Shown: positions 10,173 to 63,544, counted from the stretch's first letter. The stretch: 64,000 nt of DNA from Anolis carolinensis (GCF_035594765.1 NC_085842.1:19506782-19570781), one strand, 5' to 3'. Translations and numbers: made by a program. Notes: generated from the sequence alone by a model not told the origin.

Positions 10173-10447
10173 AAAACTATATGGCAGACACAACTGGGTG
10201 ACAAAGACAAGGACAAACAAACTGAGATATGGCTTTTACCTTAGAGCTGTAACGGAGGCCCCTTCTGCACTGCTATATAATCCAGATTATCAAAGCAGAT
10301 AATCCAGATTATCTGATTTGAACTGGATTATCTGAGAAATATTAATCCCTCCCTTTCCTGTTCAGTTTCTCCACCTAGGTAGATGATAGAACTGTGCCTG
10401 GTGGTTGACTGATACTATCAACTGTTTTATCCTTGTTTTACATTGTA

Positions 10448-10767
10448 CAGTAGAGTCTCACTTATCCAAGCTAAACGGGCCGGCAGAAGCTTGGATAAGC
10501 AAATATCTTGGATAATGAGGGATTACGGAAAAGCCTATTAAACATCAAATTAGGTTATGATTTTACAAATTAAGCACCAAAACATCATGTTATACAACAA
10601 ATTTGACAGAAAAAGTAGTTCAATACGCAGTAATGTTATGTTGTAATTACTGTATTTACAAATTTAGCAACAAAATATCACGATATAGTGAAAACATTGA
10701 CTACAAAAATGCATTGGATAATCCAGAAGCTTGGATAAGTGAGGCTTGGATAAGTGAGACTCTACTG
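10448..10767. mobile_element. Tc1/mariner-pogo MITE
   Basis: Family TIRs and flanking TA. Confidence 0.85.
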
Positions 10768-10914
10768 TATTACTGTTTTTGTCTTTTATACTGTGAATTG
10801 TATTTATATTGTAGTATATTTCATCAATGTTGTTCGGGCCTTTGCCCCATGTAAGCCACCCCAAGTCCCCACGGGGAGATGGTGGCAGGGTATAAATAAA
10901 GTTTTATATTATTA

Positions 10915-11417
10915 CTAGCTGTGCCCAGCCACGCGTTGCTGTGGCAAAGTGGTGGTGGTATTGGTTAAAAGTTGTTGTGGAATTTTTATTTGACGTTATT
11001 TGTATTTTTTAAATTAATTTTATTGTAACTTATATTTTTATTTATTATATTTTATTATTTTGTTGTATTATTTTTAGTTATTTTGTTATAGTATTTTATT
11101 GTATTAATTTTTAGTGTTTTTAATTATTTTTATTGTATTATTTGTATTTATTTTATTTTTTTATTCTTTTATTAACACTGGGCTGAGTGGGTTGCTAGGA
11201 GACCAAGTGGGCGAAGCTTAGCCTTCTAAGTGGCAGCAATTGGATAAAAACAATTATTGCTCTCCCTCTAAGTAGGACTTTATTTTTCTTTTCTTTTTGT
11301 TGTATCAACCTAGAGGCATGGATGATGCGTTGTGTTGTCAAATTTCGAGGTTGGGCGGCCTGTAGTTTTGTTGTTTTGTGGGTCGCCGTGATGCCATTAC
11401 TCATTTATATATATAGA
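10915..11417 (-). mobile_element. non-autonomous Helitron
   Basis: Minus strand 5'-TCTATATATA..., 3' hairpin GCCACAGCAACGCGTGGC then CTAG; inserted between A and T with no TSD. Confidence 0.75.
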
Positions 11418-11779
11418 TTATTATTATTATTATTTCCCCTTCCTTCCACATCTTTACCACTGCCACAGGGCCTAGAACACACAATAATAATAAATAATAG
11501 TAATGACCTACCCGGCCTTTCTCCTGAGACTCTGCTGGGCCTTCCTTCCATATTCTTCTCCCTTTGAATCCAGCTCAAAGCAGATAATTTGGCTTTTATA
11601 TGGCAGGTTTTTTGGACTGCAACTCCCACCATTCCTCACAGCCTCAGGCCCTTTCCTTTTGCCCCTCAGCCGCTTAAGCGGGAAAAGGAAAGGGCCTGAG
11701 GCTGTGAGGAATGGTGGGAGTTGCAGTCCAAAACTCCTGGAGGGCAGGCCCAAGTTGCCCCAGGCCTGGACTGGAGCCT

Positions 11780-11988: not shown

Positions 11989-11999
11989 GACTGGAGCCT

Positions 12000-12269
12000 G
12001 AAAGGGCTGCTTCAGTCACAGGGAGTGAGGGAGAGAAAGGGGAGGGACCCGAAGCCCTGCCGAAGGAGCCGAGCAGCGCCATCTTCACACTCTCCTCCCC
12101 AAAAACATTCCCTCTTTGGGCTGTCAAAAGGAGCAGAGGCCGAGGATGGCGGCGGATAGGAGCTAGGCCCGTTGCCATGGCGACCAGAGCAGTGCTGCAG
12201 GGCCCGAACGAGGCCTTCTCTGCCTTCAAAGGGAAGGAAGGCCCAGCAGGAGCTCAGGAGGAAGCCTGG
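12000..12269 (+). promoter_or_regulatory. promoter / non-coding first exon of ZNF gene A
   Basis: CpG-rich patch, YY1-type motifs GCCATCTT (~12077) and GATGGCGGC (~12145), donor |GTGGGT at 12270; paralogous to 55958-56217. Confidence 0.6.
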
Positions 12270-12741
12270 GTGGGTCGTTATTATTATTTATTATTATTGT
12301 GTGTTCTAGGCCTTGTGGCAGTGGTAAAGATGTGGAAGGAAGGGAAACGAACAGGAAAGGGAGGGATTTATATTTCTAAAAATCCTCCCCACACTTGGCA
12401 CTACAGGCAGCTTTGATTTACAGCCGAAATGAGAAACTCCAACGCTTCTTGGACATGACATTGATTTTTTTAAAATTCCAGAGCAGAATATCTTTGTATT
12501 GTCGAAGGCTTTCATGGACGGAATCACTGAGTTGCGGTGAGTTTTTCGGGCATTATGGCCATGTATGGCAGAGCTATAGATGTGGGCAAAACATCAGGAG
12601 AGAATGCTTCTGGAACATACAGCCCGAAAAACTCACTGCAATCCTATAATATCTTTGTCTGAATGGCTTTTAACTGTGAATTTTTAAATACTGCTTATAT
12701 GGATGTTTGTGTGTATTTGTGTATATATGTGTGTGTGTATA

Positions 12742-13424
12742 CAGTAGAGTCTCACTTATCCAACATAAACGGGCCAGCAGCACATTGGATAAGCAAAAAT
12801 GTTGGATAATAATGAGAGATTAAGGAAAGGCCTATTAAACATCAAATTAGATTATGATTTTACAAATTAAGCACCGAAACAACAAATTTGACAGAAAAAG
12901 TAGTTCAATACACAGTAATGTTATGTAGTAATTACTGTATTTACAAATTTAGCACCAAAATATCATGATGTATTGAAAACATTGACTACAAAAATGTGTT
13001 GGATAATCCAGAACGTTGGATAAGCGAGTCTTGGATAAGTGAGACTCTTCTGTATTTGTGTATATGTGTATGTATGTGTGTGTGTGTGTGTATACAGTAG
13101 AGTCTCACTTATCCAGGATAAAAGGGCCGGCAGAACATTGGATAAGCGAAAATGTTGGATAATAAGGAGGGATTAAGAAAAAAGCCTATTAAACATAAAA
13201 TTACATTATGATTTTACAAATTAAGCAACAAAACACCATGTTTTACAACAAATTGACAGAAAAAGCAGTTCAATACACAGCAATGTTATGTAGTAATTAC
13301 TGTATTTACGAATTTAGCACCAAAACATTGCAACATTGACTACAAAACATTGACTATAAAAAGCAGACTGGGTTAGATAATACAGAATATCGAATAAGTG
13401 AAGCTTGGATAAGTGAGACTACTG
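12742..13424. mobile_element. two adjacent Tc1/mariner-pogo MITEs (12742-13052, 13095-13424) in a (TG)n/(TA)n tract
   Basis: Family TIRs. Confidence 0.8.
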
Positions 13425-14124
13425 TATGTATATATATATATATCACATTTTTAAAATTTTATTTTCTCACTTTTATACCATAAGAGTGGGCGAAAGACCA
13501 AGGAAAGTATAATAGCTTTGTCAGTAAATTAAGTCTATTCCTAAGTCATAATGTAAAACCAAGAGTGAGTAAGAGGAGGATATTGTTATACATATTTCTG
13601 TTTTATAAAGCAGTTCCATTCACAATGCCTTTTGCTTAGGAAACACAAAAAGAATTGGTTACATGGCATCATATGTTGTTTTTATAGGGTTCCTTAGTCT
13701 TTTAAAATGGTTCGTCTATTTATACTCATATTATTCTGTTATTTTGTTTTTATTAATTAAAATGTGATTATTTTTGTATTTTATTTATTGTATTTGCTCA
13801 TTTTACTGTAAGCCACCTCGAGAGGAGAGGGGGAAGGGTATAAATAAAGCTTATTATTATTATTATTACTATTCTTTTTTGTCTTTTTTATTATTCCATT
13901 TGTTTTTTTCGCCGATCACCTTTCTTCTTATGTTGTCCCATTTTTTCTTGTCTTCTCCTCTGGGCCTATAGCCAGAAATGTTACATGCTTTAAACATTTT
14001 TACTGCTTTTCTTCCAGCAAGAGCAGCTATTTTTGATGTTGATGTAATGTTCTCGCATGTTTTCAATAATTGCAATTGTTCTATTTTAGGTTACTGTATG
14101 TTAATTTCACCTATGTACCTTTTT

Positions 14125-14470
14125 TGGATTGCAGTGAGTTATCCCAGCTGTATGGCCATGTTCCAGAAGCATTCTCTCCTGACATTTTGCCCACCTCTAT
14201 GGCAGGCATCCTCAGAGCTTGTGAGGTCTGTTGGAAACTATGCAGGTGGGGCTTTTATATATGTGGAAAGTCCAGGGTGGGAGAAAGAACTCTTGTCTGA
14301 GGCAAGCGTGAATATTGCAACTGGCCAGCTTAATTAGCATTTGAATGACCTTGCAGCTTCAAAGCCTGCCTGCTTCCTGCCTGGGGGATTCTTTGTTGGG
14401 GAGGTGTTAGCTGGCCCTGATTGTTTGCTGTCTGGAATTCCCCTGTTTTCAGAGTGTTGTTCTTTATTTA
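14125..14470 (-). mobile_element. Penelope-like element fragment
   Basis: Matches the terminal repeat of 45538-47130. Confidence 0.75.
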
Positions 14471-15123
14471 TGATTTATGGTTCATCATATCTTTAAACAT
14501 GAGTCCATGTGTTTATGTGTTCTAGATAGTACTTGGTTTTGAAAAAGAGCCCGTGTGGTATCTTTTTGGTTGTTTGCTTGTCAAACAATGGCTAACGACA
14601 AAAATGAACTTCATGAAAGGTTCATCTTGACGTGACAATAGGATGGAAACGACTTAAAACCATACAAGCAAAGTTGTTTAGTGTTAAGTGGTTTTAGCAA
14701 AAAGAATGCAACTCCAGAATGATTCATGAGGTAGCAGTGTGGATGGCACTGAGGTCAATACGAAGTCCTATAGGGTGAAACAGAGGTGGGAGGTCAGTGG
14801 AAGGCCAAGAGAAAGAAGGTGAAGCTGGGGAAATGAGAGAGATAAGTGGAAATGATGGGCCAGTCTGCTTTGATTCTCAAGTAACTTCATAGGTCTCAGG
14901 TGAAAATGATTTCCTGATCATCATGTACCTTTCCTTCAAGGAAGAGAGACAGTTGTCAGTTGTAACAGTCCCTATTTGTTCTTCCCTACAGAGTGCAACA
15001 ATTGTTAATGCAATCTCTTGGCTTTACAGAAAAATTAGGCACAAAGACTGATGAGGGATCCTTGGCCCTGAGAGGGGAGGAGCAGCTATAACTAAGAGGT
15101 TCGCATTGGACATCGGTTGAAAG

Positions 15124-15537
15124 ATGGACAGACCGGACTCAGCTGGGCCTGAAGCAGGAAACGTCCTTGAGGGCTTAAGTGCTGGGAACAAAGGAAGATT
15201 CTGGGCAAGACCAATGCTCAAATTCCTGGGTGATAACTTTGCCAACTCAGACACACAGCCTCATCATTTTGGGCAGTTCTCCTGTGAGGAGGTGGAGTGG
15301 CCCCGGGAGATCTGCAGCCAACTCCACCATCTCTGCCGCCAGTGGCTGAAGCCAGAAAAACACACAAAAAACCAGATGCTGGACCTGGTGGTGCTGGAGC
15401 AGTTCCTGACCCTCCTGCCACCAAAGATGTCAAGCTGGGTCAGGGAATGTGGAGCAGAGACATGTTCCCAGGCCGTGGCCCTGGCAGAAGGATTCCTCCT
15501 GAGTAAGGAAGCAGAGGAGCAGGATGAAGAGCAGCAG
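15124..15537 (+). CDS. ZNF gene A (SCAN-KRAB-C2H2, ZKSCAN-like), SCAN exon
   Basis: [40 protein letters not shown]...WVRE SCAN motif; donor CAG|GTGAGT. Model join(15124-15537,16150-16252,16562-16620,17939-18065,19068-20188) = 607 aa with consistent phases. Confidence 0.92.
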
Positions 15538-42669: not shown

Positions 42670-43672
42670 AATCTGCACTTATTCAGAAACAGTCACGTCA
42701 TCTTCTGAAATGTCATCATAACAATGAATTACGTATAAATATAAATTTGATTATTTTAGGGGCCCCTGGTGGCACAGTGTGTTAAAACACTGAACTGCTG
42801 AACTTGCGGACAAAAAGGTCCCAGGTTCAAATCCCGGGAGCAGAGTGAGCATCTGCTGTTAGCCCCAGCTCCTGCCAACCTAACAGTTCGAAAACATGCA
42901 AATGCACCAACCCCCAGAGTCAGACATGACTGGACTTAACGTCAGGGGAAACCTTTACCTTTACTTATTTTATAATCTGCACTTATTCACAGTTATGTCA
43001 CCTTCTGGAACGCCATCATAACATAATGCCAACAATATTATTCATTTACATTGAATTATGTATAAGTAAAGGTAAAGGTTTCCCCTGACGTTAAGTCCAG
43101 TCATGTCTGACTCTGGGGGTTGATGCTCATCTCCATTTCTAAGCCGAAGAGCCGGCATTGTCCGTAGACACCTCCAAGGTCATGTGGCCGGCATGACTGC
43201 ATGGAGCGCCGTTACCTTCTCGCCGGAGCGGTACCTATTGATCTACTCACATTTGCATGTTTTTGAATTGCTAGGTTGACAGGAGCTGGCATTAACAGCG
43301 GGTGCTCAAGCCGCTCCCATATGTATAAATATTATTATTTTATAATCTGCACTTATTCAGACACAATTATGTCACCTTCTGGAACGCCGTCATAACATAA
43401 TGCCAACAATATTATTCCTTTACATTGAATTACGTATAAATATTATTATTTTACAATCTGCACTTATTCAGACAAAATTATGTCACCTTCTGGAACACCA
43501 TCATAACATAATGCCAACAATATTATCCATTTACATTGAATTACATATCATTATTATTATTTCACAATCTGCACTTATTCAGACACAATTATGTCACCTT
43601 CTGGAACGCCATCATAACATAATGCCAACAATATTATTCATCGATATTGATTTATGTATAAATATTATTTTA
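42670..43672. repeat. 111-bp tandem repeat interrupted by two Sauria SINEs (~42759-42963 +, ~43066-43318 -)
   Basis: ATCTGCACTTATTCA recurs at ~42671, 42975, 43345, 43456, 43567. Confidence 0.85.
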
Positions 43673-44136
43673 TAACTCAATATGTCTGTCGTGTGACTAC
43701 ATATTAATGTTCTTATTTTATAATTTAATGTCTATCGTGGTTCTAGCATACAAGCTTAATGGGTTTATTTTTGGGAGGGGTGGGGACTTAGATTAGGACC
43801 ATCCTTAAAAATTATGGTAGGGCTTATTTTTTTCCTGGTGAGGTCTGATTTTTCAGAGAGAGGGTTCTTTGGGAGGCAATGGAGGCTGCCTACTCCCTTT
43901 CATTGGGAGGCAGGGCCTGGTTTAGACGACAGATGGTCTCCCCTCCTCCCTTCTTGGCTCCCCTAGAGGCCCTTCAAGGCAGAGCCTTCTGTTGGGAGGA
44001 CAATATGAGGGCCCTCCAGATGGCTGGGGAAGAGGAGGCCTCTCTGCACAAAAGGAAGGAATTAAAACAGGAATTAAGAGAGGAAGGGCCTGCTCCCGGC
44101 CCTAAAAAGCCCCCTGTCCTCCCCTCCCAAGCTCAC

Positions 44137-48473: not shown

Positions 48474-49741
48474 CTATGGTTCCTTTCCTTTATGCATTCT
48501 CTTGTGTTTCACAAGTCCTGACTTGGAAACATAGCATTTTTCACAATCCTCACATTTGTATTCTTCCTCTCCTTTGTGGATTTTCTGATGAATGACAAGA
48601 CATGACTTGGAAGAAAAGCGTTTTCCACATTCCTCGCATGAGTATGGTTTCTCTCCTGTGTGGGTTCTCTGGTGGATGACAAGATCTGGTTTCCGGGCAT
48701 AGCATTTCCCACACTCCTGGCACTTATATGGTTTTTCTCCTGTGTGGATTCTCTGGTGATTCCATAGTTCTGGCTTGGAATTAAAACATTTCCCACACTC
48801 CTGGCACCCGTACGGTTTTTCTCCTGTGTGGGTTCTCTGGTGGATGATAAGCACTGAATTTCGGGCATAACATTTCCCACACTCCTGGCATCTGAATGGT
48901 TTCTCTCCTGTGTGGACCCTTTTGTGGATCACAAATGATGACTTGGAAACAAAACATTTCTCACACTCCTGGCATTTGTATGGCTTCTCTCCTGTGTGGA
49001 TTCTCTGGTGTTTAAGTAGTCCTGACCTGGAATTAAAACACTTCCCACATTCTTGACAGTTGTACAGTTTCTTTCCTGTGTGGATTCCTTGGTGGACAAC
49101 AAGCACTGAATGTTGGGCATAACATTTCCCACATTCCTGGCATTTGTATGGCTTTTCCCCTGTGTGGATTCTCTGGTGGATCAGAAGTACTGAATTGGAA
49201 ACAAAACATTTCCCACACTTTTGGCATCTGTAAGGTTTCTCTCCCGTGTGGGTTCTCTGGTGTCTGAGGAGTCCAGATGTAGAATTAAAACACTTCCCAC
49301 ATTCTTGGCAGCTGTATGGTTTCTCTCCTGTGTGGATCACCTGGTGTTGCCGAAGATGTGACTTGGAAGCAAAGCATTTTCCACACTCCTGGCATCTGTA
49401 TGGTTTCTCTCCTGTGTGAATTATCTGGTGGATCACAAGGCGTGATTTGAAAGTAAAACATTTTCCACACTCCTGGCATTTGTGTGCTTTCTCTGCTATA
49501 TGGTATTCCTCGTGCTGCAATTTGAGATCAACACCTTTCATCGAAAGTTCATATCCAAAGTGGTTCTCTTCCTGCTGCATTCTCTCATCACACACATGCG
49601 TAATGTTTGGGGCAAAATATCTTCCACAGCTGGTGCATATGCAGGACATCTCTTCAGGACATTTTTCTTCCATGCAGGCTTCTTCGTGTTTGGGAATGTT
49701 TTGACAATGGTTGGCAAAGGCATTTTTTCCCTTCCAGTTAC
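48474..49741 (-). CDS. ZNF gene C C2H2 zinc-finger exon (12 fingers)
   Basis: Open C2H2 array; acceptor TTTTAGCAG|GT. Model join(52775-52362,51753-51651,51311-51253,50562-50436,49741-48474) = 656 aa. Confidence 0.93.
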
Positions 49742-50435
49742 CTGCTAAAAGAAAATCAGTATATGAAAATACATTCCCAAGTTTCAGCAAAAAGAAATAT
49801 CAGGGATCAAAGACATAGGTAAATAAGAACTTAATAGGAAAGGATCCTCAGAAGAAGCAACACATCTGCATTGGTCCTTCCTGGGTCCAGCTGAAATGTT
49901 TTCTATTTTTCATTAAGAGTGGCCATGCTAGTTGGAAGGTGGATCTTGAGGCATGTAGTCCAGAATAATATTATTTTAATCTCACAATCTCTGAGTTTTT
50001 TTTGAGTTTCATTTACTTACATTAGGTCTGGAGCTCTTAAAATAAGCTTTGATTAGTTCCATTCTACAGGTGGAATGGAAACATGAGCCTGAACATATGC
50101 TCAGGGTAGTTATATTCCAAACTGTGGTATCTCCAAACTGGAAGCTGCTCAAGTCCCTGAAGCTCAGAGAGGATCAAAGATGAGAAGAGTGGCAACCAGA
50201 AACCCATAAAGACAGGTGGAGATGTACAACTGCTCTGATCATGCAGCACCAATGTCCAAACTGAAGGCATACAATCGACACTGGAAACAGCTGCAAGGAA
50301 GGGCCTGGCCTGGAAGGAGAGCAGTCCCAGTCCTGCCTTAAGAAAACTCCCAGTGCTTGGTTGCTGTCCTTGTTCTGAGTAGTCTGGCATTTTAAAATAG
50401 ATATGATTACAAGCAAAAGAAAGAAAAGGCCATAC

Positions 50436-50562
50436 CAAGAGGACACATGATGCTACAGGTTTCCTCCATGACCTCGTTGTACAGGGCTCTCTGATCCGCA
50501 TTTAGGAAGACCCACTCTTCTGGGAGGAAAGATACGGCCACCTCTTCAAAGGTCACTGGAAC
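50436..50562 (-). CDS. ZNF gene C KRAB-A exon
   Basis: 127 nt, [43 protein letters not shown]. Confidence 0.9.
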
Positions 50563-51252: not shown

Positions 51253-51311
51253 CTGAAATATTCCTCCTCCATTGTAACCAAGAGCCATTGTTCCCTGTGT
51301 TACTTCAGCCC
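51253..51311 (-). CDS. ZNF gene C linker exon (59 nt)
   Basis: Paralog of 16562-16620, AG/GT intact. Confidence 0.8.
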
Positions 51312-51650: not shown

Positions 51651-51753
51651 CTTGCAAAGTGATGTCCCTTTGCTGGGAGCTCTGCCTGGCACCTGATGGA
51701 GCCTCCCTTACAGCAGAGAAATCAGGTTGAATGTCCACAGGGAGCTTCTTCAC
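51651..51753 (-). CDS. ZNF gene C linker exon (103 nt)
   Basis: Paralog of 16150-16252, open frame, AG/GT intact. Confidence 0.85.
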
Positions 51754-52361
51754 CTGAAACAATTGTCAGGATTCAAGACAGGATTAGAAAGTGATGTACT
51801 TCCAAATGGCGGGATGTGTGTATGAAATTGACAGTGTAGCAGGCAGGGGCAAACTTTGATCCTCCAGGAGTTTTGGACTTCAACTCTCACAATTCCTAAC
51901 AGCCAGTAGTCTGTTAAGAATTGTGGGAGTTGAAGTCCAAAACACCCAGAGGGCCAAAGTTTGTCCATGCCTTGAGTAGAGTGAATCCATCCATCATTTC
52001 ACCCTCGCTCACCTCTAGAAAAAAAGGGTATCATGCTTTAGAGGGGGAAGGGCAGACTTGGATGTGTCAAGGAACTACAACCACACTAGCAAATCCACCT
52101 CTGCTTCCATGGCAACCAAAAGATGTGGCATTCCCTTTAGAAACAAAACAAATAAGGAGTACGCATCTTACTTGAAGATTCTGAGATTGTGAATCCACTT
52201 CAAATTAAGAGGAGCCTTGTTTTCTTAAGATTATACATTACAACAGAGATGCAACAAATATCCCAGTGGCTCTTGAGAGTGGCAGTAGTAGGAACAGAAG
52301 AGATTGAAGAACAAGTGAACAGGGGAAGATGTCCTGAACCTTGCAGATGAAATGCACTTAC

Positions 52362-52775
52362 CTGCTCTTTTTCATCCTGCTCCTCTGCTTCCTTACTCAG
52401 GAGGAATCCTTCTGCCAGGGCCATGGCCTGGGAACATGTCTCTGCTCCACACTCCCTGACCCAGCTTGACATCTTTGGTGGGAGGAGGGTCAGGAACTGC
52501 TCCAGCACCACCAGGTCCAGCATCTGTTTTTTTGTGTGTTTTTCTGGCTTCAGCCACTGGCGACAGAGATGGTGGAGTTGGCTGCAGATCTCCCGGGGCC
52601 ACTCCACCTCCTCACAGGAGAACTGACTAAAATGCTGAGGCTGTATGTCTGAGTTGCCAAGGTTATCACCCAGGAATTTGAGCATCGTTCTTGCCCAGAA
52701 TCTTCTATTACTTTCAACACATGAGCCCTGAACGACTTGTCCTGCTTCAGATCCAGCTGAGTCCGATCTGTCCAT
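52362..52775 (-). CDS. ZNF gene C (SCAN-KRAB-C2H2, ZKSCAN-like), SCAN exon
   Basis: SCAN motif [26 protein letters not shown]; donor CAG|GTAAGT. Confidence 0.92.
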
Positions 52776-53729
52776 CTTTCAATCGATGTCCAATGGAGGT
52801 ACCAATGCAAACCTCCTGGTTATGGCTCCTCCTTCCCTCTCAGGGTCAAGAATCCCTCATCAGTCATTGTGCCAAAACTCTGTAAAGCCAAGAGATTGCA
52901 TTAACAATTGTTGCACTCTGTAAGCAAGAACAAATAGGGACTTTTACAACTGAGAACAGTCTCTCTTCCTTGAAGGAAAGGTCCTTGGTGATCAGGAAAT
53001 CATTTTCACCTGAGACCCATGAAGGAAGGCCTTGAGTTATTTGAGAATCAAAGCATTGTGGCCCATCATTCCCACTCATCTCTCTAATTTCCCCCAGCCT
53101 CGCCTTCCTTCTCTTGGCCTTCCACTGACCTCCCATCTCTGTCTCACCCTTCGTATTGACCTCAGCCCCATCCACACTGCTGCCTCATGAATAATTCTGG
53201 AGTTTCATTCTTTTTGCTAAAACTACTTAACACTTAAAAAAACACCTTTGCTTGTATGGTTTTAAGTTGTTTCCACCCTATTGTGACCTCAAGATGAATC
53301 TTTCATGAAGTTCATTTTTGTCACTAGCCATTGTTTGACATGTAAACAACAAAAATGATACCACACGGGGTCTTTTTCAAATCACAAACACATGGACTCA
53401 CATTTTAAAATAGGCTTTCTGAAATACAATTTAACAGTCATTCTAACTTTAAAATGACATTACTCCATCCAAAAAGACTGCTGTTGGTTGTTGTGAGCTG
53501 TAAAGTCATTTCTGACCTTTGGTAATCCTAAATTTATGCTTCCACAGGGTTTTCTTAGCAAGATTTTTGCAGTGGGGTAGACTGCCTTCCAATGAGAGAA
53601 TGTGATGGCCCAGCACACCCAGTAGGTTTCAAGTGAAAGCGGATTTGAACCCAGATGTTCAAGCCTTTATATCAAATTGGTTCTTTTTGTGGCATGACCT
53701 GCCAGAATAGATCCAACAGCTATAGATAG

Positions 53730-53763
<34 letters not shown>

Positions 53764-53943
53764 AGGGATAAAGGCTAGACTATGGACCAAGCTAATGAGT
53801 ATTTATATAAGCATTACTGACACACCAACAAATGAAATTGTCTCTAAGAAATGTAAATTAAATGTTATTATTAAAAGTAAGGGAAAATAGAGAATGTAAT
53901 GTATAAGTAATGTGACAAAGTGATTAGAAGAAATCCTAACGGT

Positions 53944-53949
<6 letters not shown>

Positions 53950-53990
<41 letters not shown>

Positions 53991-54890
53991 TTATTCTTGT
54001 ACCCCGCCCCATCTCCCCGAAGGGACTCGGGGCGGCTCACATGGGGCCTTGCCCAACATCACAATATAAAATCAAAACAAAAACACAAATTTACAACAAT
54101 AAATCAACAATATCGGTAAAACAATCGAAAAGGACAATCTTACAAGATAAAATGTTAAAACAGGTATATCAAACACAAGTCTGGGCCGAAAGGTGAATGT
54201 GTCAAATCGGGAGGAGATACAGTAGAGTCTCACTTATCCAACATTCACTTATCCAACGTTCTGGATTATCCAACGCATTTTTGTAGTCAATGTTTTCAAT
54301 ACATCGTGATATTTTGGTGCTAAATTCATAAATACAGTAATTGCTACATAGTATTACTGCATATTGAGCTACTTTTTCTGCCAAGTTTGTTGTATAACAT
54401 GATGTTTTGGTGCTTAATTTGTAAAATCATAACCTAATTTGATCTTTAATAGGCTTCTCCTTAATCTCTCCTTATTATCCAACATATTCGCTTATCCAAC
54501 GTTCTGCCGGCCCGTTTATGTTGGATAGGTGAGACTCTACTGTAGTTACATAATTGACATAGTCAATGAAGTACTATAAATGACAATAGTGACAATAAAA
54601 GGGCAGATCAGTGGGTCTATTATTACATAGGCAGGCATCTTAAACCAACAAAAGTCACTCATCAAAGGCTTTCCGGAAAAGCCAGGTTTTCAGATTCTTC
54701 CGGAAGGAGAGGAGGGTGGGGGCCAGCCTAATCTCCCTAGGGAGCAGGTTCCAAAGCTGGGGGGCTATGACAGAGAAGGCCCTCTCTCTCGTCCCCACCA
54801 ACCGCGCCTGCGAGGGTGGTGGGAGCGAGAGGAGGGCCTCCCCCGACAAGCGAAGAGATCGTGCAGGTTCATAGGGGGAAATGCGGTCTC
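53950..54890 (-). mobile_element. L2 LINE 3' end with a MITE nested at 54220-54542
   Basis: RERAFSVIAPQLWNLLPREIR...FRKNLKTWLF and (TTA)n tail. Confidence 0.85.
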
Positions 54891-55957
54891 TAATAATAAT
54901 AATAATAATACATTTTTATGTGTTGTCGAAAGCTTTCATGGCTGGAATCTCTGTGTTGCTGTGAGTTTTCCAGGCTGTATGTCCATGTTCCAGAAGCATT
55001 CTCTCCCTGGACATTCCACAGATATATAACCCTCACTTGCCTAGTTTCCTACAGACCTCACAACCTCTGAGGATGCCTGGCGTAGATGCAGGTGAAACGT
55101 TAGGAGATAATGCTTCGGGAACATGGTCACACAGGCCGAAAATTCATAGCAACCCAACAACGTGTTATTTATATCCCACTCCCTCTTCCGGAAGGGACTC
55201 GGGGCGGCTTACAGCAAGTAACAGTTAAAACAATACAAAAAAGAGTACATAGGTCAAATTAACATACAAATAGAACCATTGCAATTACTGGAAACATGTA
55301 AGAACATAACATATCATCAACATCAAAAATAGCTGCTCTTGCTGGAAGAAAAGCATTAAAATGTTAAAAACCATTTAATATTTCTGGGTATAGCCCCAGA
55401 GGAGAAGATAAGAAAAAGGTGGGACAATATAAGAAGAAAGGAGATCAACAAGAAAGTCCAATGTTTTCCTAAACAAGACATTGTGAATGGAACTGTTTTA
55501 AAAATAGAAATACTGTATGTGTAACAATACCCTCCCCTTCCTCATTCTTGCTGTACATTCAGACTTATGGATAGACTTACCTTACTAACAAAACTCCATA
55601 ATTAACTTATTATACTTTCCTTGGTCTCTCCCCCCACTCTTATGGTATAAAAGTGTAAAAATGAATACACACATATACACACAAACATACATAGATATAA
55701 AAACAGTTTAAAAATTCAGTTAGAAATCATTCAAACATATTCTGCTCTGGAATTCTTTTAAAATCAATTTCATGTCTAAGAAGAACTGGAGTTTCTAATT
55801 TCTACTGTAAATCAAAGCTGTCTGTACCAAGCGTGGGGAGGATTTTTTAAAAATCTAAATCCCTCCCTTTCCTGTTCATTTCCCCCTCCTTCCACATCTT
55901 TACCACTGCCACAAGGCCTGGACCACACAATAAAAATAAATAATAGTAATGACCCAC

Positions 55958-56217
55958 CCAGTCTTCCTCCCTTTGAAGGCTGAGAAGGCCTCGTCTGGGC
56001 CCTACAACACTGCTCTGGTCTCCATGGCAACGGGCCTAGCTCCCATGCGCCGCCATCCTCGGCCTCTGCGCCTTTCAACACCCCCAAGAGGGAATGTTTT
56101 TAGGGAGGAGAGTGTGACGATGACGCCGCTGGGTCCCTCCCCTCAACTCCCTTCCTCCCTTCCTTTCTTTCTTTCTCTCCTTCCCTGTGACTGAAGCAGC
56201 CCTTTCAGGCTCCAGTC
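55958..56217 (-). promoter_or_regulatory. promoter / non-coding first exon of ZNF gene C
   Basis: CpG patch paralogous to 11990-12269; donor |GTGGGT at 55957. Confidence 0.6.
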
Positions 56218-56359
56218 CAGGCCTGGGCCCACTTGGGCCCGCCCTCCAGGAGTTTTGGACTTCAACTCCCACAATTCCTAACAGCCGGTAGGCTGTTAGG
56301 AATTGTGGGAGTTGAAGTCCAAAACTCCTGGAGGGCGGGCCCAAGTGGGCCCAGGCCTG
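56218..56359. mobile_element. palindromic hAT-type MITE
   Basis: 142-bp hairpin with 4-nt centre; imperfect 8-bp TSD CTCCAGTC/CTTTAGTC. Confidence 0.85.
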
Positions 56360-56702
56360 CTTTAGTCTACAGATCTTCAGGAGAGATAAAGCTGAGTATA
56401 ATAATCTGCTTTAAATTGATCTGAGTCCACACTGCCAGATAACCCAATTCAAAGCAGATAATCTGGATTTTATATGGGAGTGTCAAAGGGGCCTCAAGTC
56501 CACAGAGCAGCAGAAAACAGGTGTGCTCCCTCCTCAGTGTGACTTCCATGACATGCAAATATAACAAGAATACTAGGGGCCCTTCTGCACTGCCGTATAA
56601 TTCAGAATATCAAGGCAGAAAATCCCTCAATATCTGCTTTGATCTGAATTATATGAGTCCACACTGCCATGTATTCCAGTTCAAAGCAGATAATACCCGG
56701 CT

Positions 56703-57012
56703 GCTGAGTGGGATGGAGCCATCCTACCAAGGAAGCACTCTCCAACAGCCACTGGGGGACCCTCCCAGCATCTTTAACTGCCATTCCACCGGTCGCTGAG
56801 TGGGAGGAAGCCATCCTACCAACCAGGCTTTCTCCAACAGCCACTGAGAGACCTTCCCGCCATCTTTAACTGTCATTCCACCGACCACTGAGAAGCCCTT
56901 CCGTCGTCTTTCACTGCCATTTCACCAGCCGCTGAGTGGGAGAGAGTCAGCCTACCAACCAGGCTTTCTCCAACTGCCACTGAGAGACCTTCCCGCCATC
57001 TTTAACTGCCAT
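56703..57012. repeat. ~91-bp tandem repeat with ~45-bp subunits
   Basis: GCTGAGTGGG...CCTACCAA...CTCCAAC.GCCACTG...CATCTTTAACTG recurs three times plus a half unit. Confidence 0.8.
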
Positions 57013-57294
57013 CTTTTTATTATTTTTTGTGGAGACGTCTTAATTTTCTCACTGGCTAATGTTTATCACCAGTGACAAAGCTTAGCGAAATATACTATTG
57101 AACTGATGAGTCTCCACAATAATTGTAATTGGTTTTCTTTTTTTTACTGTTTATGTCTTATTTCTGGACATCGTTGTGCCTTGTGTGATTTTTGTCTTGT
57201 ATTTTATGTTAAATGTGTTTTGACATGTGTTGTATTATGTTGTGAGCCACGTTGGTTCCCATTAGGGAGAAAAGTGTTATTACTATTACTAATA

Positions 57295-57981
57295 CAGTAG
57301 AGTCTCACTTATCCAAGACTTGCTTATCCAAGGTTCTGGATTATCCAATGCATTTTTGTATTTATTTACTTATTTACAGTATTTATATTCCGCCCTTCTC
57401 ACCTTGAAGGGGACTCAGGGCGGATCACATTACACATATAAGGCAAACATTCAATGCCTTAACATAGAACAAAGACAAAGACAAACACGGGGCTCCGAGC
57501 TGGCCTCGAACTTATGACCTCTTGGTCAGAGTGATTTGTTGCAGCTGGCTGCAACTGGCTGCTCAACAGCCTGCGCCACAGCCCGGGCACATTGTAGTCA
57601 ATATTTTCAATATATCATGATATTTGGTGCTGGCCTCGAACTCATGACCTCTTGGTCAGAGTGATTTGTTGCAGCTGGCTGCAGCTGGCTGCTCAACAGC
57701 CTGCGCCACAGCCCGGGCACATTGTAGTCAATGTTTTCAATATATCATGATATTTGGTGCTAAATTAGTAAATACCGTAATTACAACATAACATTACTGC
57801 ATATTGAACTACTTTTCTGTCAAATTGGTTGTATAACATGATGTTTTGGTGCTTAATTTGTAAAATCATAACCTAATTTGATGTTTAATAGACTTTTCCT
57901 TAATCCCTCCTTATTATCCAAGATATTCGTTTATCCAAGGTTCTGCCGGCCCGTTTAGCTTGGATAAGTGAGACTCTGCTG
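57295..57981. mobile_element. Tc1/mariner-pogo MITE with nested SINE and 130-bp tandem duplication
   Basis: Family TIRs; SINE (-) at ~57358-57590; duplicated units start at 57499 and 57629. Confidence 0.8.
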
Positions 57982-58090
57982 TATTAGAAAAGGAGAAGTT
58001 GATGGACAAGAACCACTGCTCACAACAGCAACCACTTCATCGGGTTGTATGTCTTTCGGGCTGTATGGCCATGTTCCAGAAGTATTCTCT

Positions 58091-58131
58091 CCTGACGTTT
58101 CGCCCACATCTATGGCAGGCATCCTCAGAGG
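58091..58131 (-). ncRNA. minimal type I hammerhead ribozyme (Penelope-associated)
   Basis: Reverse complement identical to the 47009-47049 core. Confidence 0.7.
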
Positions 58132-58357
58132 ATCACAACAACCCTGTGATCCCGGCCATGAAAGCCTCCGACAACCACTTCATCATTCAAAAGTATTTTG
58201 AGAAAGATGACTACAGATTCTAACTCAGGCCTGGGCAAACTTGGGCCCTCCAAGTGTTTTAGACTCCGGCGCCCACAATTCCTAACAGCCTACCTGTTGA
58301 AGTCCAAAACACCTGAGGCCAAGCTCAAGTTGGTCCAAGCCTGCTACAAAGAGATCC

Positions 58358-58559
58358 TACTTCCGGTCCCCCCTTCAAACATGCCCTCCGGCATCCTATT
58401 CTTGCTCAGAGCCTGGCAGAGTGGCAGTCACGTGACGCCAAGCGGGAGGCGTGGCCAAGCATCCTGCTGAGGAAAGCCAGCCGAGTGCCCCCTTCAAAGG
58501 AGTCCCCCGGAAACGCCTCTTCTTTTGTGTGCGAGGAAGAGGCCGGTAGGAAAGTACAG
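58358..58559 (+). promoter_or_regulatory. promoter / first exon of a probable fourth gene, paralogous to the gene B promoter
   Basis: ACTTCCGG ETS site, GTCACGTGAC at 58427-58436, shared CAGAGCCTGGCAG and TCTTTTGTGTGCG blocks, donor CAG|GTGAGG. Confidence 0.6.
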
Positions 58560-58980
58560 GTGAGGCTGGCGGGGGCCGGAGGGGGAAGGGGGTGGGTGGG
58601 TGGGCTCCCAAGCTTTAAAGCCTTATCCTCATCTTATCCTCGTCTCAGTCTTCCAACCCTCTTGCTTAACCTTTTCTGTTTATTTATTATATTACTTTCC
58701 CCTCACAAAACAGGACTCACAGCCTCTATTGCAGGCATGGGCAAACTTCGGCCCTCCAGGTGTTCTGGACTTCAACTCCCACCATTTGGCTGTTAGGAAT
58801 TGTGGGATTTGAAGTCCAAAACACCTAGAGGGCCGAAGTTTGCCCATGCCTGCTCTATTGCCACTGCTGTCACACACAGATATAAACACAAGGTTGTTTT
58901 GTTGCTACAGTCTCACTTGTAATTCAAGATAGAATAATATACATAATCTGACTATTATTTATTAATAATTAATAATAATA

Positions 58981-59220
58981 GCCCGGGCTGTGGCGCAGGC
59001 AGGAGAGCAAGCCAGCTGCAACCAGCTGCAATGAATCACTCTGACCAGGAGGTCATGAGTTCGAGGCCCGCTTGGAGCCTATGTTTGTCTTGTCTTTGTT
59101 CTATGTTAAAAGGCATTGAATGTTTGCCTATATGTGTAATGTGATCCACCCTGAGTCCCCTTCGGGGTGAGAAGGGCGGAATATAAATGCTGTAAATAAA
59201 TAAATAAATAAATAAATAAT
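58981..59220 (+). mobile_element. tRNA-derived SINE with L2-type tail
   Basis: Same family as 16710-17165; (TAAA)n tail. Confidence 0.8.
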
Positions 59221-59308
59221 GAATATGGGAAACAAACAATCATATTTAGGAATGTTTTACAAAGATATAATAAACATTATGTTCATGTTTGAATATTTTT
59301 CAAAATAC

Positions 59309-59626
59309 GTGTTGTTGAAGGCTTTCATGGCCAGGATCACAGGGTTGTTGTATGTCTTTCGGGCTGTGTGGCCATGTTCCAGAAGTATTCTCTCCTGACG
59401 TTTCGCCCACATCTATGGCAGGCATCCTCAGAGGTTGTGAGGTATGGAAAAACTAAGCAAGGTATGTTTATATTCCTGGACTTCCCACAGATATATATAA
59501 ACATTCCTTGCTTAGTTTTTCCATACCTCACAACCTCTGAGGATGCCTGCCATAGATGTGGGCGAAACATCAGGAGAGAATACTTCTGGAACATGGCCAC
59601 ACAGCCCGAAAGACATACAACAACCC
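59309..59626. mobile_element. Penelope-like palindromic fragment
   Basis: ~130-bp near-identical inverted arms. Confidence 0.85.
59394..59434 (-). ncRNA. minimal type I hammerhead ribozyme (Penelope-associated)
   Basis: Intact core on the minus strand within the palindrome arm. Confidence 0.65.
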
Positions 59627-60270
59627 CCTTTTTCAAAATAACTCATAGGTTCCTCCAAAGCTACGTAGTCATATTTCTCTTGCCCATCTTTCCAATTGTA
59701 GAACTTTATACTACCCAATACTTCCTTCTGACAGTTGATTCCTTATCTCCCCTAGATTTTTCGTTTTTGATTCCCAATCTTTTAATTTCATAATTTCTTT
59801 TTCTTTAAATTCTCTTTCTAACTCCCTTTTGAGATTCATTGGGAATTTTTTTGTAATTAACACCGGTGTTAATGGGGAGATCGGTGGTAATAGTTTTTCT
59901 TCATACTTGGTCCAGATTTCTAATATATTTTTTAAAAAGGAGTTCCCTATTTTATTATACAATTTCTTCTCTGAATTCCTGGTTTTCCCTATGAAGAAAA
60001 TATTCTCTAATTTCATATCTATATCTTTACTCTCTTCTTCTAACCATTCTAAATCCTCTTGTCCTATAATCCCTTCAATAATATACCTTAATTGATTTGC
60101 CATATAGTATGGGTTTAAGTCTGGTATTCCCAGACCTCCCTTCTTTTGTATTTTATACCATTTTTCTTTATTTATTCTAGCCCTTTTATTCCCATTACAA
60201 AAGGTATTTATCATATTCTGCCAATTTGTAATTTCACCAGTTGAAATGTTAATAGGTAGCATTCTAAACA
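59627..60270 (-). mobile_element. L1-clade LINE ORF2 fragment (post-RT region)
   Basis: FRMLPI...KGGLGIPDLNPYYMA motif; A-rich sense strand. Confidence 0.8.
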
Positions 60271-61067
60271 AAAAAAAAAAAAAGCTATGTAGTCATAACT
60301 TTAAATTAATCCGCTATAGTCCCATGTGAGTTGAAACTGTAGTGAAAAGTCTTTGGAAGTACGTGATGATCAGGAATGTGATCCGGAAAACAACAAGGGT
60401 TCCTGGGTGCTTTTATCCTTGTTTCAGGAAAAGTATCCCTTCTTCAGGTTGCTTGCTTCATGTATTTGAACTAGTGTCTTCAGAAGATTTTATAGGCTAT
60501 ATTTAAAGAGACAACATAATAGATATGTTATACTAGCGCCCAGTAGCAATAAACAATTGATAATCTTTTAACAACAATTAAAAAAAGAGAAAACACTTCC
60601 TCTGGAAAGGCCTACAACAAGGACAGAAAACTGGTAGCTGTTGATCCTCAGGTGTGTTAGCAGTGTCGGTCAAAATATGTAGCAAGTGGTTCTTATTTTC
60701 CCACCCAAATGAAGACATGTTTGTGTATGTACAAACTCGTGATGAAAATGAGCATGCACATACACAAGCAAAACTCCTGGCTGGGAAGAGAGAGATGAGT
60801 TATGCCCATAACTGTACAGCTCTCTTTTTGAAGCCAACCAGAGAAGGAAAGCTTACCACTGAACCTCTATTACTGTCAAGAAGTTCTGTTTAATGTTCAA
60901 TTTAAAACCATTAGATTTGGTCCTGCTACCCTCTGAGACAGCAGAGAATGAGCTCCTCTGTAGCAATCCTTGAGGTGTTTAAAAAGAGCAGCCATGTCAC
61001 TCTGCAATGTTCTCTTCACCAGCTGAACAGACCCAGCTCCCATAATCTGTCTTTGTATGTTTAATTG

Positions 61068-62828
61068 TCAGGCTCCTGCTAGTTCCGGAGTTATAATGTT
61101 CCTAGAACAACCACAATCCACGAATGCCTTGCAGGTGGCCCGATTCTCTAGCCCCGAGATGCAGATTGGCACTACTATCATGCGTTTGTCCCGACTCACC
61201 AGTTTTTCCGAAGATTCTGGGGCTTGCACCTCCTCCTCCGCACGCCTTCCGGTTGCTGGCTTGGGTTTTGAGGGTTTTGGCGGCTCCCCCTTCCGTGCCC
61301 AACATTCTGCTGCTCGATGGCCCGTTTTCCCACACACAAAGCATCCCGGTTTAGGTTTGTTGTCGTCTCCTCTGGGGGGAATCCCCGGCCTCCCTCCGTA
61401 CCTTTCCTGCTTCCTCGTTTCTCCTCGGCCTCTCGCCACCGGTCTCTGCTGGCCGCTGCTGCCCCTGAAGCGCTTCACTTGGGCCAGGGTGGACTCAACG
61501 CGCCCCGCTAGTTGAATCCATCCCTGGAGCGTTTCGGGGTCATCTCTGTGCGCTGCCCAGCTGAAAACTTCGGGGCGTAGTCCCTCTTTAAATATTTCCA
61601 CTTTGGTCACTTCAGACCACTCTGGTACCCTTTCCGCGAGGTGGAGGAATTCCTCTGCGTACTCGGGCACCGTTTTGTCCCTCTGCTTTATTCCTTTAAA
61701 CTGGTCTCGAGCCCTCAATTGCTCTAGCCGGTCTCTGAACCGGTTTTCCAGGGCGGCGAGGAAGCGGGGCACCGACCTCAGGCATGGGTCGCGTCTGGCA
61801 TGTAGTTGCACATACCAGCTTGCAGCTCCTCTCTTTAGTGTGTTGCCGATGGCTCGAACCCTGCTTGCTTCGGAGGGGAATGTGTGTGCATTGTCTTCCA
61901 TGTATCCTCTGATGCTAATTAGAAAAAAGTTCAGTTCAGCTGATTCCCCTCCGTATTCTAGTTTGAGATCTTCCCTTCTTGGCATCCATTCTGCGGCCCG
62001 TTGATGCTGTCTGGGAGGCATGGGGAAGGGTTGCATCGGGTTTCCTCGGACGGCCCCTTGGAACACGCCGCGCCCCACTCCGGTGGTCATTCTGCGCGGC
62101 TCCCGAAATCCTGCCGCCGCTGTCGGCCCTTCCACCCATCCGCATACGGGCCTCGCTGTAGCCCCCGCATCTCGCCTTTCCTCGTCGTACGGCACATCCT
62201 CCTCCTCCTCCTGGATCTCCTGCTCCTCTCCGCCTTCGTCTGCAAATCCACTGGACCCGATCCCTGGCCCCAGTGGTCTTTCCACCCCGACGCCCATTCG
62301 GGGGGTTGGGAGCTCTGTTGGAGATGGCGGCCTCAGAGTTCCCAGAGCTCGCTGGCGCTCCACTTCGCGTGCCATTCTGTCTCGGAACTCCAGCTCCTGC
62401 CAGTATTCCTCATCTCCCTCGTCCCTCGCTGCCACGGGACTCTGCGTTGATGCTCGCTGGCCCCTCTGGCTCCAATCTCCTTCTTTACTTGGCTCTCTCT
62501 CGGCGCCATATCGGATGGGCTCCTTTTGGAGATTCTCTTCCAATAGTGGCACCAACCTCCCCACGGTTTCCGACAGCCTGGATAAATTAGTTTCCAGGAT
62601 GGATAACCGCAGGGCCACGGTCTCCGGCATGCTTCCTCCAGATCCCCAACTGGTTTCTGCAGCCGCAGAGACGCCTCTTCCTCCCCTGGGAATCCTCTGG
62701 GTCACGCCGTTCGGCCTGGGGTACCCCGTAGAGGAAGCTATGGCTTGCAGCGTCTCTCCTCCCTTCGGCCGGGCCCCTTGCAAAGGCCTCCCTGCTCCAT
62801 TTGGGCTTTGATCTCCTTCTTCACTCAT
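61068..62828 (-). CDS. gag: retrotransposon Gag (capsid + CCHC nucleocapsid) fused to a truncated aspartic protease, 586 aa
   Basis: ATG at 62828 (MSEEGDQ); PEG10/RTL-like capsid (YGGESAELNFF...GAASW...QRDKTVPEYAEEF...FKEGL); CFVCGKTGHRAAEC knuckle; AFVDCGCSRNII protease motif. Confidence 0.88.
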   Translation of the reverse strand: MSEEGDQSPNGAGRPLQGARPKGGETLQAIASSTGYPRPNGVTQRIPRGGRGVSAAAETSWGSGGSMPETVALRLSILETNLSRLSETVGRLVPLLEENLQKEPIRYGAEREPSKEGDWSQRGQRASTQSPVAARDEGDEEYWQELEFRDRMAREVERQRALGTLRPPSPTELPTPRMGVGVERPLGPGIGSSGFADEGGEEQEIQEEEEDVPYDEERRDAGATARPVCGWVEGPTAAAGFREPRRMTTGVGRGVFQGAVRGNPMQPFPMPPRQHQRAAEWMPRREDLKLEYGGESAELNFFLISIRGYMEDNAHTFPSEASRVRAIGNTLKRGAASWYVQLHARRDPCLRSVPRFLAALENRFRDRLEQLRARDQFKGIKQRDKTVPEYAEEFLHLAERVPEWSEVTKVEIFKEGLRPEVFSWAAHRDDPETLQGWIQLAGRVESTLAQVKRFRGSSGQQRPVARGRGETRKQERYGGRPGIPPRGDDNKPKPGCFVCGKTGHRAAECWARKGEPPKPSKPKPATGRRAEEEVQAPESSEKLVSRDKRMIVVPICISGLENRATCKAFVDCGCSRNIITPELAGA

Positions 62829-62882
62829 TATCACTTCACTGCGAATTCCGCAGGAGGGTGAGAACAGGATTCTCGACTTAAA

Positions 62883-63244
62883 TGTCAGGCTCACTTCAAA
62901 GGACCAGTCTGAACGCAGATCAAAGATAGCTGCTCTCAAATCCAATCTTTATTGAAGAATACATGACTTTGGAAAAGTCGAGAATGACCTAATGTTTACA
63001 TACACTCAATTTTATCACTTCTGATTCAACGTAATACCACACGCAAATATCATCATCAAATCCCACCCCCTGGATCACATTACTACCATTCCCACACACT
63101 ATATCAATTATAATTGTTTATACTTTCGAGCCTGAGTTCCCAGGCTCATTTTATCTTCTCCCGCCAGGTGCTTGCAGGATTATTTATGTTATGAAGTCAG
63201 ATTCAGGGCTTGGAAATTCAGCCCTGGGATCTGGCTCCATGACA
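62883..63244 (-). repeat. 5' LTR (362 bp)
   Basis: TGTCA...TGACA termini; GATAAAA at 63016-63010, Inr-like TCATTCT with A at 62985, AATAAA at 62953-62948. Confidence 0.85.
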
Positions 63245-63544
63245 TTTAATGATAATAATTTTATTATTATGACCATAGACCAAGAGTGTAAAACATTAAA
63301 AACATTTTTTTTAAAAAAATGTTAACATTAAGACCAGAAATTTATAACATAAAATCAAAAAGTTCATACGCTTATAAAATCTGTGGGTATGAATAATAAA
63401 ATGATTATGTCTAAACTTTATCCACTGAAATCGTCCACAAACTCCACTAAATTTAGCTACTCTATAAGTAATTGATGGATCCCTATTATCTATAAGATGT
63501 TTTAGATAATATTCTTCATTCTTGCCAGAGATCTTTTGTACATT

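Follow-up and report, generated by a model that had tools for sequence, protein, structure and literature searches.

A conserved splice donor at the Gag/protease boundary of Anolis Ty3/gypsy elements points to a Gag-only mRNA and appears orphaned in a truncated copy upstream of ZNF883

The closest described system to the one considered here is the Drosophila copia element, for which a 2-kb spliced gag RNA is on record (Yoshioka et al. 1990, as cited in PMC5580714). As far as that account goes, copia has a single gag-pol open reading frame (ORF), an intron of ~3 kb covers all of pol, and the spliced RNA encodes Gag only, which leads to an excess of Gag. Here, we analyse a window of 64,000 nucleotides (nt) of Anolis carolinensis (GCF_035594765.1 NC_085842.1:19506782-19570781), on the minus strand of which a truncated long terminal repeat (LTR) element with an open gag lies upstream of a zinc-finger gene (gene C, ZNF883 in the NCBI annotation). 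A first-pass annotation of the window drew attention to a splice donor at the end of this gag and proposed that it could join Gag to the KRAB and zinc-finger exons of gene C in place of SCAN. From a comparison of related copies we consider it likely that the GTGAGT at this position is the conserved 5' splice site of a Gag-only mRNA of a young, apparently active Ty3/gypsy family, and that the donor of the window copy has been orphaned by a deletion; its joining to gene C is very improbable.

The predicted arrangement in Anolis has the same single gag-pol ORF, intron over all of pol and Gag-only product as copia. However, copia is an insect element of the Ty1/copia group (Pseudoviridae), whereas the Anolis family belongs to a lizard and is of the Ty3/gypsy order (protease, reverse transcriptase, RNase H, integrase; PR-RT-RH-IN). 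Also unlike copia, the acceptor follows the pol stop, the tail is made of polypurine tract and U3, and the arrangement is one that gene models predict. Plant Ty1/copia elements provide a second comparison, as EVD and BARE1 produce shGAG mRNAs, i.e. a Gag mRNA from a single-ORF element (PMC5580714, PMC3735527). Like the Anolis family they have conserved splice sites near the protease, but the plant introns are short, protease-centred and act via a frameshift and premature polyadenylation, whereas in Anolis all of pol would be removed and the normal LTR poly(A) site used. No conserved splicing is reported for Arabidopsis Ty3/gypsy elements (PMC5580714), and spliced Ty3/gypsy RNAs are known for other products, such as CERV of Cer1. 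We found no description of a Gag-only spliced RNA of a vertebrate Ty3/gypsy element in the open literature, of which our coverage was incomplete.

Capture of a capsid by a zinc-finger gene has a precedent as well. In the account given in bioRxiv 10.1101/2025.03.03.638093, after Emerson and Thomas, SCAN arose once, when a Gmr1-like capsid was captured by a KRAB-ZNF gene, and the origin of SCAN given in the first-pass annotation agrees with this account. As in that capture, the window has the gag of an LTR element upstream of a KRAB zinc-finger gene of the same orientation, with splice-compatible frames. However, the capture of SCAN is described there as ancient and as involving just the capsid's C-terminal domain, whereas the window holds a whole 543-amino-acid (aa) Gag (N-terminal region, capsid and zinc knuckle) of another lineage, and the chimeric product is only potential. 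Host-transposase fusion genes, which arise by exon capture and often include KRAB exons (Cosby et al., bioRxiv 10.1101/2020.05.07.082677), resemble the window locus in that a transposon exon and its splice site are proposed to be joined to host exons. In contrast to the sequence potential seen in the window, these genes derive from DNA transposases and are fixed, expressed and selected.

Read directly on the minus strand, the Gag/protease boundary of the window copy is GAA AAA CTG|GTGAGT, with the last exonic G at 61200, GT at 61199-61198 and the hexamer at 61194..61199. The distance from the ATG at 62828 to 61200 is 1629 nt or 543 codons, and the donor is therefore in phase 0, so that the strong phase-0 donor after 543 Gag codons described in the first-pass annotation is present and its codon count holds. 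Its placement at the end of gag is right insofar as this is the Gag/protease boundary, but the donor sits within one continuous gag-pol frame rather than at the end of an ORF. GTGAGT encodes Val-Ser of the read-through frame, which runs for 43 codons beyond the donor into the start of the protease (…FVDCGCSRNIITPELAGA) before it meets a TGA at 61070-61068. In a crude matrix this GTGAGT is the top donor-like site of the LTR-gag piece. The motif G|GTRAGT has 10 occurrences per 128 kb of strand, with 0.13 expected in gag; for gag to contain one or more of them in phase 0 has a probability of ~0.04, and for one to lie at the boundary (within 180 nt) in phase 0 a probability of ~0.005. The donor G|GTGAGTCG is identical in all seven copies compared from the window's family. 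Taken on its sequence and conservation, the donor at 61199 can be regarded as something other than a chance hexamer.

A search with the Gag ORF returns dozens of A. carolinensis records named 'uncharacterized protein LOC1342…', of 566-578 aa, and the window gag is 96% identical to the 578-aa proteins among them. These records follow the window Gag to …SSEKL (residue 543) and then continue with the tail NYDERRTEEEDEENEGAMSWSQIPGLNFQALNLTS; the genomic read-through after residue 543 is VSRDKRM…, as in four other protein models (P0019, P0020, P0022, P0024). The 35-aa tail, a peptide that contains ...EEEDEENEGAMSWSQIPGLNFQALNLTS, is encoded downstream of the pol stop and within the LTR. At a full-length copy (L001), the gene model has an exon 1 at 10001-11629 that ends AAATTG|GTGAGTCGG, an intron of 3215 nt and an exon 2 that starts at 14845, preceded by ttgtttgatttgtttcag, 23 nt beyond the point at which a 1606-codon gag-pol ORF stops. 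Exon 2 has its stop codon inside the 3' LTR. Translation of the polypurine tract gives the acidic tail, the end of which comes from the first 55 nt of U3.

The same donor and a post-pol acceptor appear in NCBI gene models at all eight loci compared, which represent three Gag families in two Anolis species (six loci of the window's own family, one of a 61%-identical family and one of A. sagrei). The copia-type layout of single ORF, boundary donor and acceptor beyond pol is found at each of them. The donor is G|GTGAGTCG at the six own-family loci and GTGAGT at the A. sagrei locus; the 61%-identical family reads TTG|GTAAGT, where the change from GTG to GTA is synonymous, so that the valine and the GTRAGT consensus are both kept. 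The distance from pol stop to acceptor is 19-24 nt at seven of these loci; the A. sagrei copy, whose read-through ORF is shortened by an early stop, has its acceptor 743 nt after that stop. The gag-pol ORF is intact (1583-1606 codons) at six loci. The first-pass annotation had named conservation and use of the donor as a check: GTRAGT is kept in all related copies examined and forms the end of exon 1 in the gene models at 8/8 loci. Its side suggestion, that the parental element uses the donor for a spliced Gag-only mRNA, matches the gene models at many loci and, judging from these comparisons, is the best-supported part of that earlier interpretation.

We infer that the gene models mirror real spliced RNA. 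Intact copies would then carry gag and pol in one frame of ~1600 codons, and a ~3.2-kb intron, from the Gag/protease boundary to the acceptor 19-24 nt past the pol stop, would take out all of pol. The spliced RNA would encode Gag with an acidic tail of 13-35 aa, encoded by the polypurine tract and the start of the 3' LTR, and would end at the LTR poly(A) site. It would be ~2.2 kb long, next to a genomic RNA of ~5.4 kb, and contain the junction ...AAATTG|AACTAT. Such an RNA could be a solution to the problem of making more Gag than Pol, as in Drosophila copia. This would be a vertebrate Ty3/gypsy case of an expression strategy already known from copia, with comparable plant Ty1/copia elements, and one that is kept in several apparently active Anolis families.

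In a gecko relative (L011:6001-9327, Paroedura picta CM110982.1), whose Gag is 30% identical, the corresponding boundary reads …EDGLL with a TAA directly after it, and the protease (VDSGCT) is encoded further on in a different frame. Such a layout of stop and frameshift is the classical one, without a splice of the Anolis type. Because this relative with a stop and a change of frame has no such splice, the single-ORF Anolis lineages look as if they splice instead of frameshifting. The Anolis splice versus the gecko stop and frame change would offer a clean comparison of solutions to the Gag:Pol ratio in single-ORF retroelements. One of the read-through models, P0019 (UniProt R4GAB6, 713 aa), comes from another model source and consists of Gag and protease followed by a tail like that of the post-pol exon (…TEEEVGERGGAMSWGQFPELSLQALE…), which points to either an alternative splice form or a copy with an internal deletion.

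The assignment to Ty3/gypsy (Metaviridae) follows from several features: TG...CA direct LTRs, a target duplication, a Gag with capsid and CCHC knuckle, and the PR-RT-RH-IN order. In L001 the domains are PR 562-652, RT 777-936, RH 1011-1142, IN 1245-1417 and SH3_Tf2-1 1536-1597. Because the LTRs of L001 are 100% identical and are flanked by a 6-bp target duplication (CAGAAG), this copy looks like a very recent insertion. The window Gag ORF matches Retrotrans_gag, Ty3_capsid and zf-CCHC (Pfam PF03732, PF19259, PF00098) and has no SCAN (PF02023) match at E <= 0.01. Membership in the Gmr1-like group was considered and rejected, as RT precedes IN in L001 and the Gag is without a SCAN match. The label 'sushi-type' in the first-pass annotation fits only loosely, since the Anolis families have gag and pol in one ORF of 1583-1606 codons, with no -1 frameshift of the sushi-ichi or PEG10 kind between frames. 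Anolis relatives carry the NCBI name 'retrotransposon-derived protein PEG10', and PF16297 (RTL1-8/LDOC) matches distant relatives. A sequence search of the PDB with the capsid gave no match. Among the related protein records, P0026 is a frameshifted Gag copy. Another, P0037 (A. carolinensis LOC134299561, 702 aa), has a foreign N-terminus unconnected with the donor, in which ~200 non-Gag residues (coiled-coil-like, without a Pfam match) precede a capsid 48% identical to that of the window; it may be another chimeric gene model.

The window copy starts next to the 5' copy of a target-site duplication (ATTAAA, 63245..63250), directly upstream of the LTR start TGTCATGG; this and the following features are all on the minus strand. 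The 5' LTR (62883..63244, 362 nt, TG...CA) has an AATAAA ~65 nt before its end and is 97.8% identical to the L001 LTRs. It is followed by the leader from the LTR to the gag ATG (62829..62882), which would hold the primer-binding region and is colinear with L001 9945-10000, and by the 543 open codons of gag (61200..62828). Of pol there remain 128 nt (61072..61199) that encode the N-terminus of the protease (...FVDCGCSRNIITPELAG) in frame with gag and align to the read-through models P0019, P0020, P0022 and P0024. The copy is colinear with L001 up to ~11757-11762; homology begins at the LTR start, reaches 128-133 nt beyond the donor and ends in a junction (61066..61075) that is formed by a GAGC microhomology and the final 6 nt of the 3' LTR, CTGACA, and that creates the TGA at 61070-61068. 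Immediately beyond is the 3' copy of the target-site duplication (ATTAAA, 61060..61065), at the same time the poly(A)-like hexamer that a transcript would meet first past the donor.

The junction reads GCAGGAGC CTGACA ATTAAA in the window, whereas L001 has GCAGGAGCGCTGAAATG at the same spot and GTGAGCCTGACA at its LTR end. GAGC is common to the internal sequence and the LTR end of L001, and the junction sequence GAGCCTGACAATTAAA is unique to the window copy. As CTGACA is an LTR end and ATTAAA is present on both sides, a complete insertion must have come first and the deletion later; no second piece of the element and no 3' LTR was found elsewhere in the window (blastn). We therefore read the window copy as a once complete insertion that later lost ~3.5 kb between two GAGC homologies. 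Gone are pol together with the acceptor, the polypurine tract and, save for 6 nt, the 3' LTR with its AATAAA. The first-pass annotation had noted that the element has no 3' LTR poly(A) signal, and this is accounted for by the ~3.5-kb deletion, which took both the acceptor and the poly(A) site.

Little decay is visible in what remains. Counted against six comparison copies only, the LTR and leader have one private substitution in 419 nt and gag has 16, of which 12 are synonymous and 4 non-synonymous, and one is of the CpG-decay type; TAC at codon 477 is an example of a private variant. The CpG observed/expected ratio of the copy is 0.65-0.81. The surplus of synonymous changes would most simply reflect the history of an unsampled active sublineage before insertion, and it is not evidence of selection at the window locus. 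By these measures the copy appears to be a young deletion derivative that is little decayed.

Gene C, on the same strand as the element, is represented by ZNF883 isoforms X2 (P0038, 656 aa) and X1 (P0158, 657 aa), and each of its exons, translated singly, matches P0038 exactly. The ATG (52775) lies in the SCAN exon (52362..52879), which has candidate acceptors at 52879 and 52917 and the donor CAG|GTAAGT at 52361; the coding part, 52775-52362, comprises 138 codons, corresponds to P0038 residues 1-138, matches PF02023 with E = 8.7e-34 and ends in phase 0. The next exon encodes a linker (51651..51753, 103 nt, P0038 residues 139-172), starts in phase 0 and has the acceptor caattgtttcag|G. A 59-nt exon (51253..51311) that also matches P0038 and a 127-nt KRAB-A exon (50436..50562) that starts in phase 0 follow, PF01352 being listed for both P0038 and P0158. 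Twelve C2H2 fingers are encoded in the last exon (48474..49744), with acceptors at 49741 (X2) and 49744 (X1), a coding part at 49741-48477 and 100% identity to P0038; the two isoforms differ by this NAGNAG acceptor choice, and X1 has four transcript accessions. The domain order of SCAN, KRAB and tandem C2H2 is that of a SCAN-KRAB zinc-finger gene. This exon-by-exon match bears out the shared strand and the phase-0 end of the SCAN exon that the first-pass annotation relied on. A gene C model with a KRAB acceptor at 50555 and without the 59-nt exon was rejected, as P0038 supports 50562 and 51311-51253.

Element and gene C are separated by 8.2 kb of old repeats (52880..61059). The sense strand of this interval has 16 hexamers that read AATAAA or ATTAAA, and 18 of its acceptor-like sites reach 8 bits or more. 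Within it, blocks at 55231..56217 (minus strand) are shared with the region upstream of a paralogue, gene A: 56217-55729, 55665-55465 and 55480-55231 match 11989-14131 on the plus strand at 77-81% (blastn). Because of this paralogy the interval 56217-55231 is the probable site of the gene C promoter and first exon, so that the gene would have its own promoter between the element and the SCAN exon. No clear CpG-island promoter was found upstream of gene C, where gag is the sole CpG-rich stretch.

Among the alternatives, one in which the element affects gene C without any fusion protein is unlikely, though it deserves to be set out. The LTR would be an alternative promoter of gene C, and gag a long 5' exon spliced to 52879 or 52917, giving a bicistronic or decay-prone RNA that modulates ZNF883. 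Acceptors 52879 and 52917 are both conserved in gene A, are the first acceptors downstream that are conserved between the paralogues and have good strength. Phase-0 stops follow each of them: the Gag frame ends after 19 codons when entering at 52879, an acceptor that the first-pass annotation listed among the junctions to look for, and after 17 codons at 52917. Isoform X1 comes from four transcript variants, which indicates alternative 5' ends, and LTR-driven chimeric transcripts with element donors are well known (PMC4056533, PMC4098794). However, 8.3 kb of decoy acceptors and poly(A) signals would have to be crossed, and a 1.7-kb upstream ORF would strongly depress translation of ZNF883.

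We regard as very improbable the proposal of the first-pass annotation itself, that LTR transcripts in some tissue skip from the orphan donor to the phase-0 exons of gene C and thereby replay, at polymorphic age, the origin of SCAN-ZNF genes. The phase-0 donor at 61200 does face phase-0 acceptors at 51753 and 50562. A join to 51753 is open as claimed, with 543 + 518 = 1061 aa of Gag, linker, KRAB and 12 C2H2 fingers, and one to 50562 would give 543 + 464 = 1007 aa; frames were verified exon by exon. The frame match is real, but it is expected for one site in three. In favour of the skip, the donor is genuine and strong and has lost its cognate acceptor and poly(A) site, the element is oriented like gene C, the frames are open and the LTR is nearly unchanged relative to active copies; splicing capture of transposon exons by host genes is moreover an established route (bioRxiv 10.1101/2020.05.07.082677; for the origin of SCAN, bioRxiv 10.1101/2025.03.03.638093).

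Against it, entry at 52917 or 52879 runs into stops, so an in-frame product needs skipping of the SCAN exon, whose acceptor (52879) scores 8.7 bits, for acceptors of 3.6 bits (51753) or 3.4 bits (50562). These scores come from approximate matrices, not from a trained model, and rank the sites roughly. Also in the way are the decoy acceptors and poly(A) hexamers of the interval and, probably, the region with the promoter of gene C itself. The top acceptor of the interval, 60780 with 12.3 bits, would add 36 codons before a stop and is followed by three AATAAA at 60190-60172. The exchange of Gag for SCAN is without support in the annotation, where all gene C products begin at the SCAN exon, and in a collection of 5.8 billion proteins none of 344-1094 aa, a range that would include the fusion, joins this Gag to KRAB or C2H2 domains. 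Nor is a coding sequence called over the window gag in the annotated assembly (window 38474-62775 is base-for-base GCA_035594765.1 CM069368.1 19545255-19569556), and no record was found of the 586-aa ORF. To explain gag's private substitutions, selection in situ need not be assumed. If the LTR of the window copy fires, three products would be likelier than a fusion: Gag with 43 protease residues to the junction TGA, from unspliced RNA; Gag with a short junk tail, via a nearer cryptic acceptor; or a splice into gene C exon 2 with a stop after 17-19 codons.

A predicted precedent for the joining of such a donor to host exons exists in a snake. Isoform X1 of PTK6 in Ahaetulla prasina (XP_058033410.1; P0166, 771 aa; L010, CM054096.1) is, in a computational model, Gag joined to the PTK6 kinase domain. 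Its Gag exon (L010:11660-13126) is followed by kinase exons from 25023 on, 11.9 kb downstream, and no SH3 or SH2 match was found in the protein. The Gag part (capsid and CCHC) is 37% identical to the window Gag and ends CTCCTG|GTAAGT in phase 0, with a read-through of VS…. As in the window, the donor is a homologous phase-0 one and Gag displaces N-terminal host exons, but species and host gene are different, and the snake element is within an intron. Its architecture recalls retroviral gag-kinase fusions. Because this predicted fusion uses the homologous donor, capture through an orphan donor is plausible as a mechanism.

That the hexamer is fortuitous, has no role in splicing and makes the 578-aa proteins annotation artefacts is hardly credible: the gene models are indeed computational, but the site is invariant in 7/7 copies; as GTAAGT or GTGAGT it persists where proteins are 61% and ~50-55% identical, and also in another species; the hexamer is rare in window DNA (~0.005 for one in phase 0 at the boundary); at every locus the site has as its partner a CAG acceptor with a pyrimidine tract, located downstream of pol (19-24 nt past the stop at 7/8 loci); and an ab initio predictor would have no reason to swap 1060 open, homology-rich pol codons for a 35-codon tail.

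The reading we prefer, a conserved Gag-only donor that was orphaned in the window copy and probably does not feed gene C, has several points against it. The Gag-only splice rests on NCBI computational gene models, and the splice-site scores rest on approximate, untrained matrices. Reads from a multi-copy family are hard to assign, which makes the missing model at this locus weak evidence of silence. The four X1 transcript variants differ outside the coding sequence, and one of them could start in the LTR. Finally, the snake Gag-PTK6 model indicates that orphan donors may well reach distant host exons.

If the Gag-only splice is as predicted, elements of this kind bear a strong phase-0 donor exactly where a self-assembling domain ends, and a copy that loses its 3' part would become a ready-made 5' exon, i.e. 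a built-in route to exon capture. This would offer a concrete mechanism for how host genes come to acquire capsids, with SCAN as one case and the Gag-PTK6 predicted in the snake as a possible other, and the window locus could serve as a natural experiment on it. Should the orphan donor reach gene C after all, the donor that enables this would be a legacy of the way in which the element itself splices its Gag-only RNA.

Other features of the window concern its duplications and repeats. Gene A (SCAN exon 15124-15507, plus strand) and gene C share upstream blocks, 11989-15109 (+) and 52802-56217 (-), that are 77-86% identical and inverted. Because these blocks are shared in inverted orientation, the two genes appear to come from an inverted segmental duplication that took in 3.4 kb or more of 5' flank. 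The truncated element is followed directly by 60780-61059 (-), by eye a CR1-like 3' fragment, and 59711-60271 (-) contains a 186-aa ORF without a Pfam match that by eye resembles the C-terminal part of ORF2 of a long interspersed nuclear element (LINE). Both the LINE-like ORF and the CR1-like fragment have the orientation of the element and carry AATAAA hexamers. Two hairpins are present, at 56218-56359 (69-nt arms, 100% complementary, 4-nt loop) and at 59342-59626 (132-nt arms, 98% complementary, 21-nt loop), and both resemble a short interspersed nuclear element (SINE) and are made of repeat units (…GGGAGTTGAAGTCCAAAAC…) of which the window has many copies. Tandem duplications are found at 57499-57758 (two 130-nt units, 98%) and at 43324-43676 (three 111-nt units, 89-92%).

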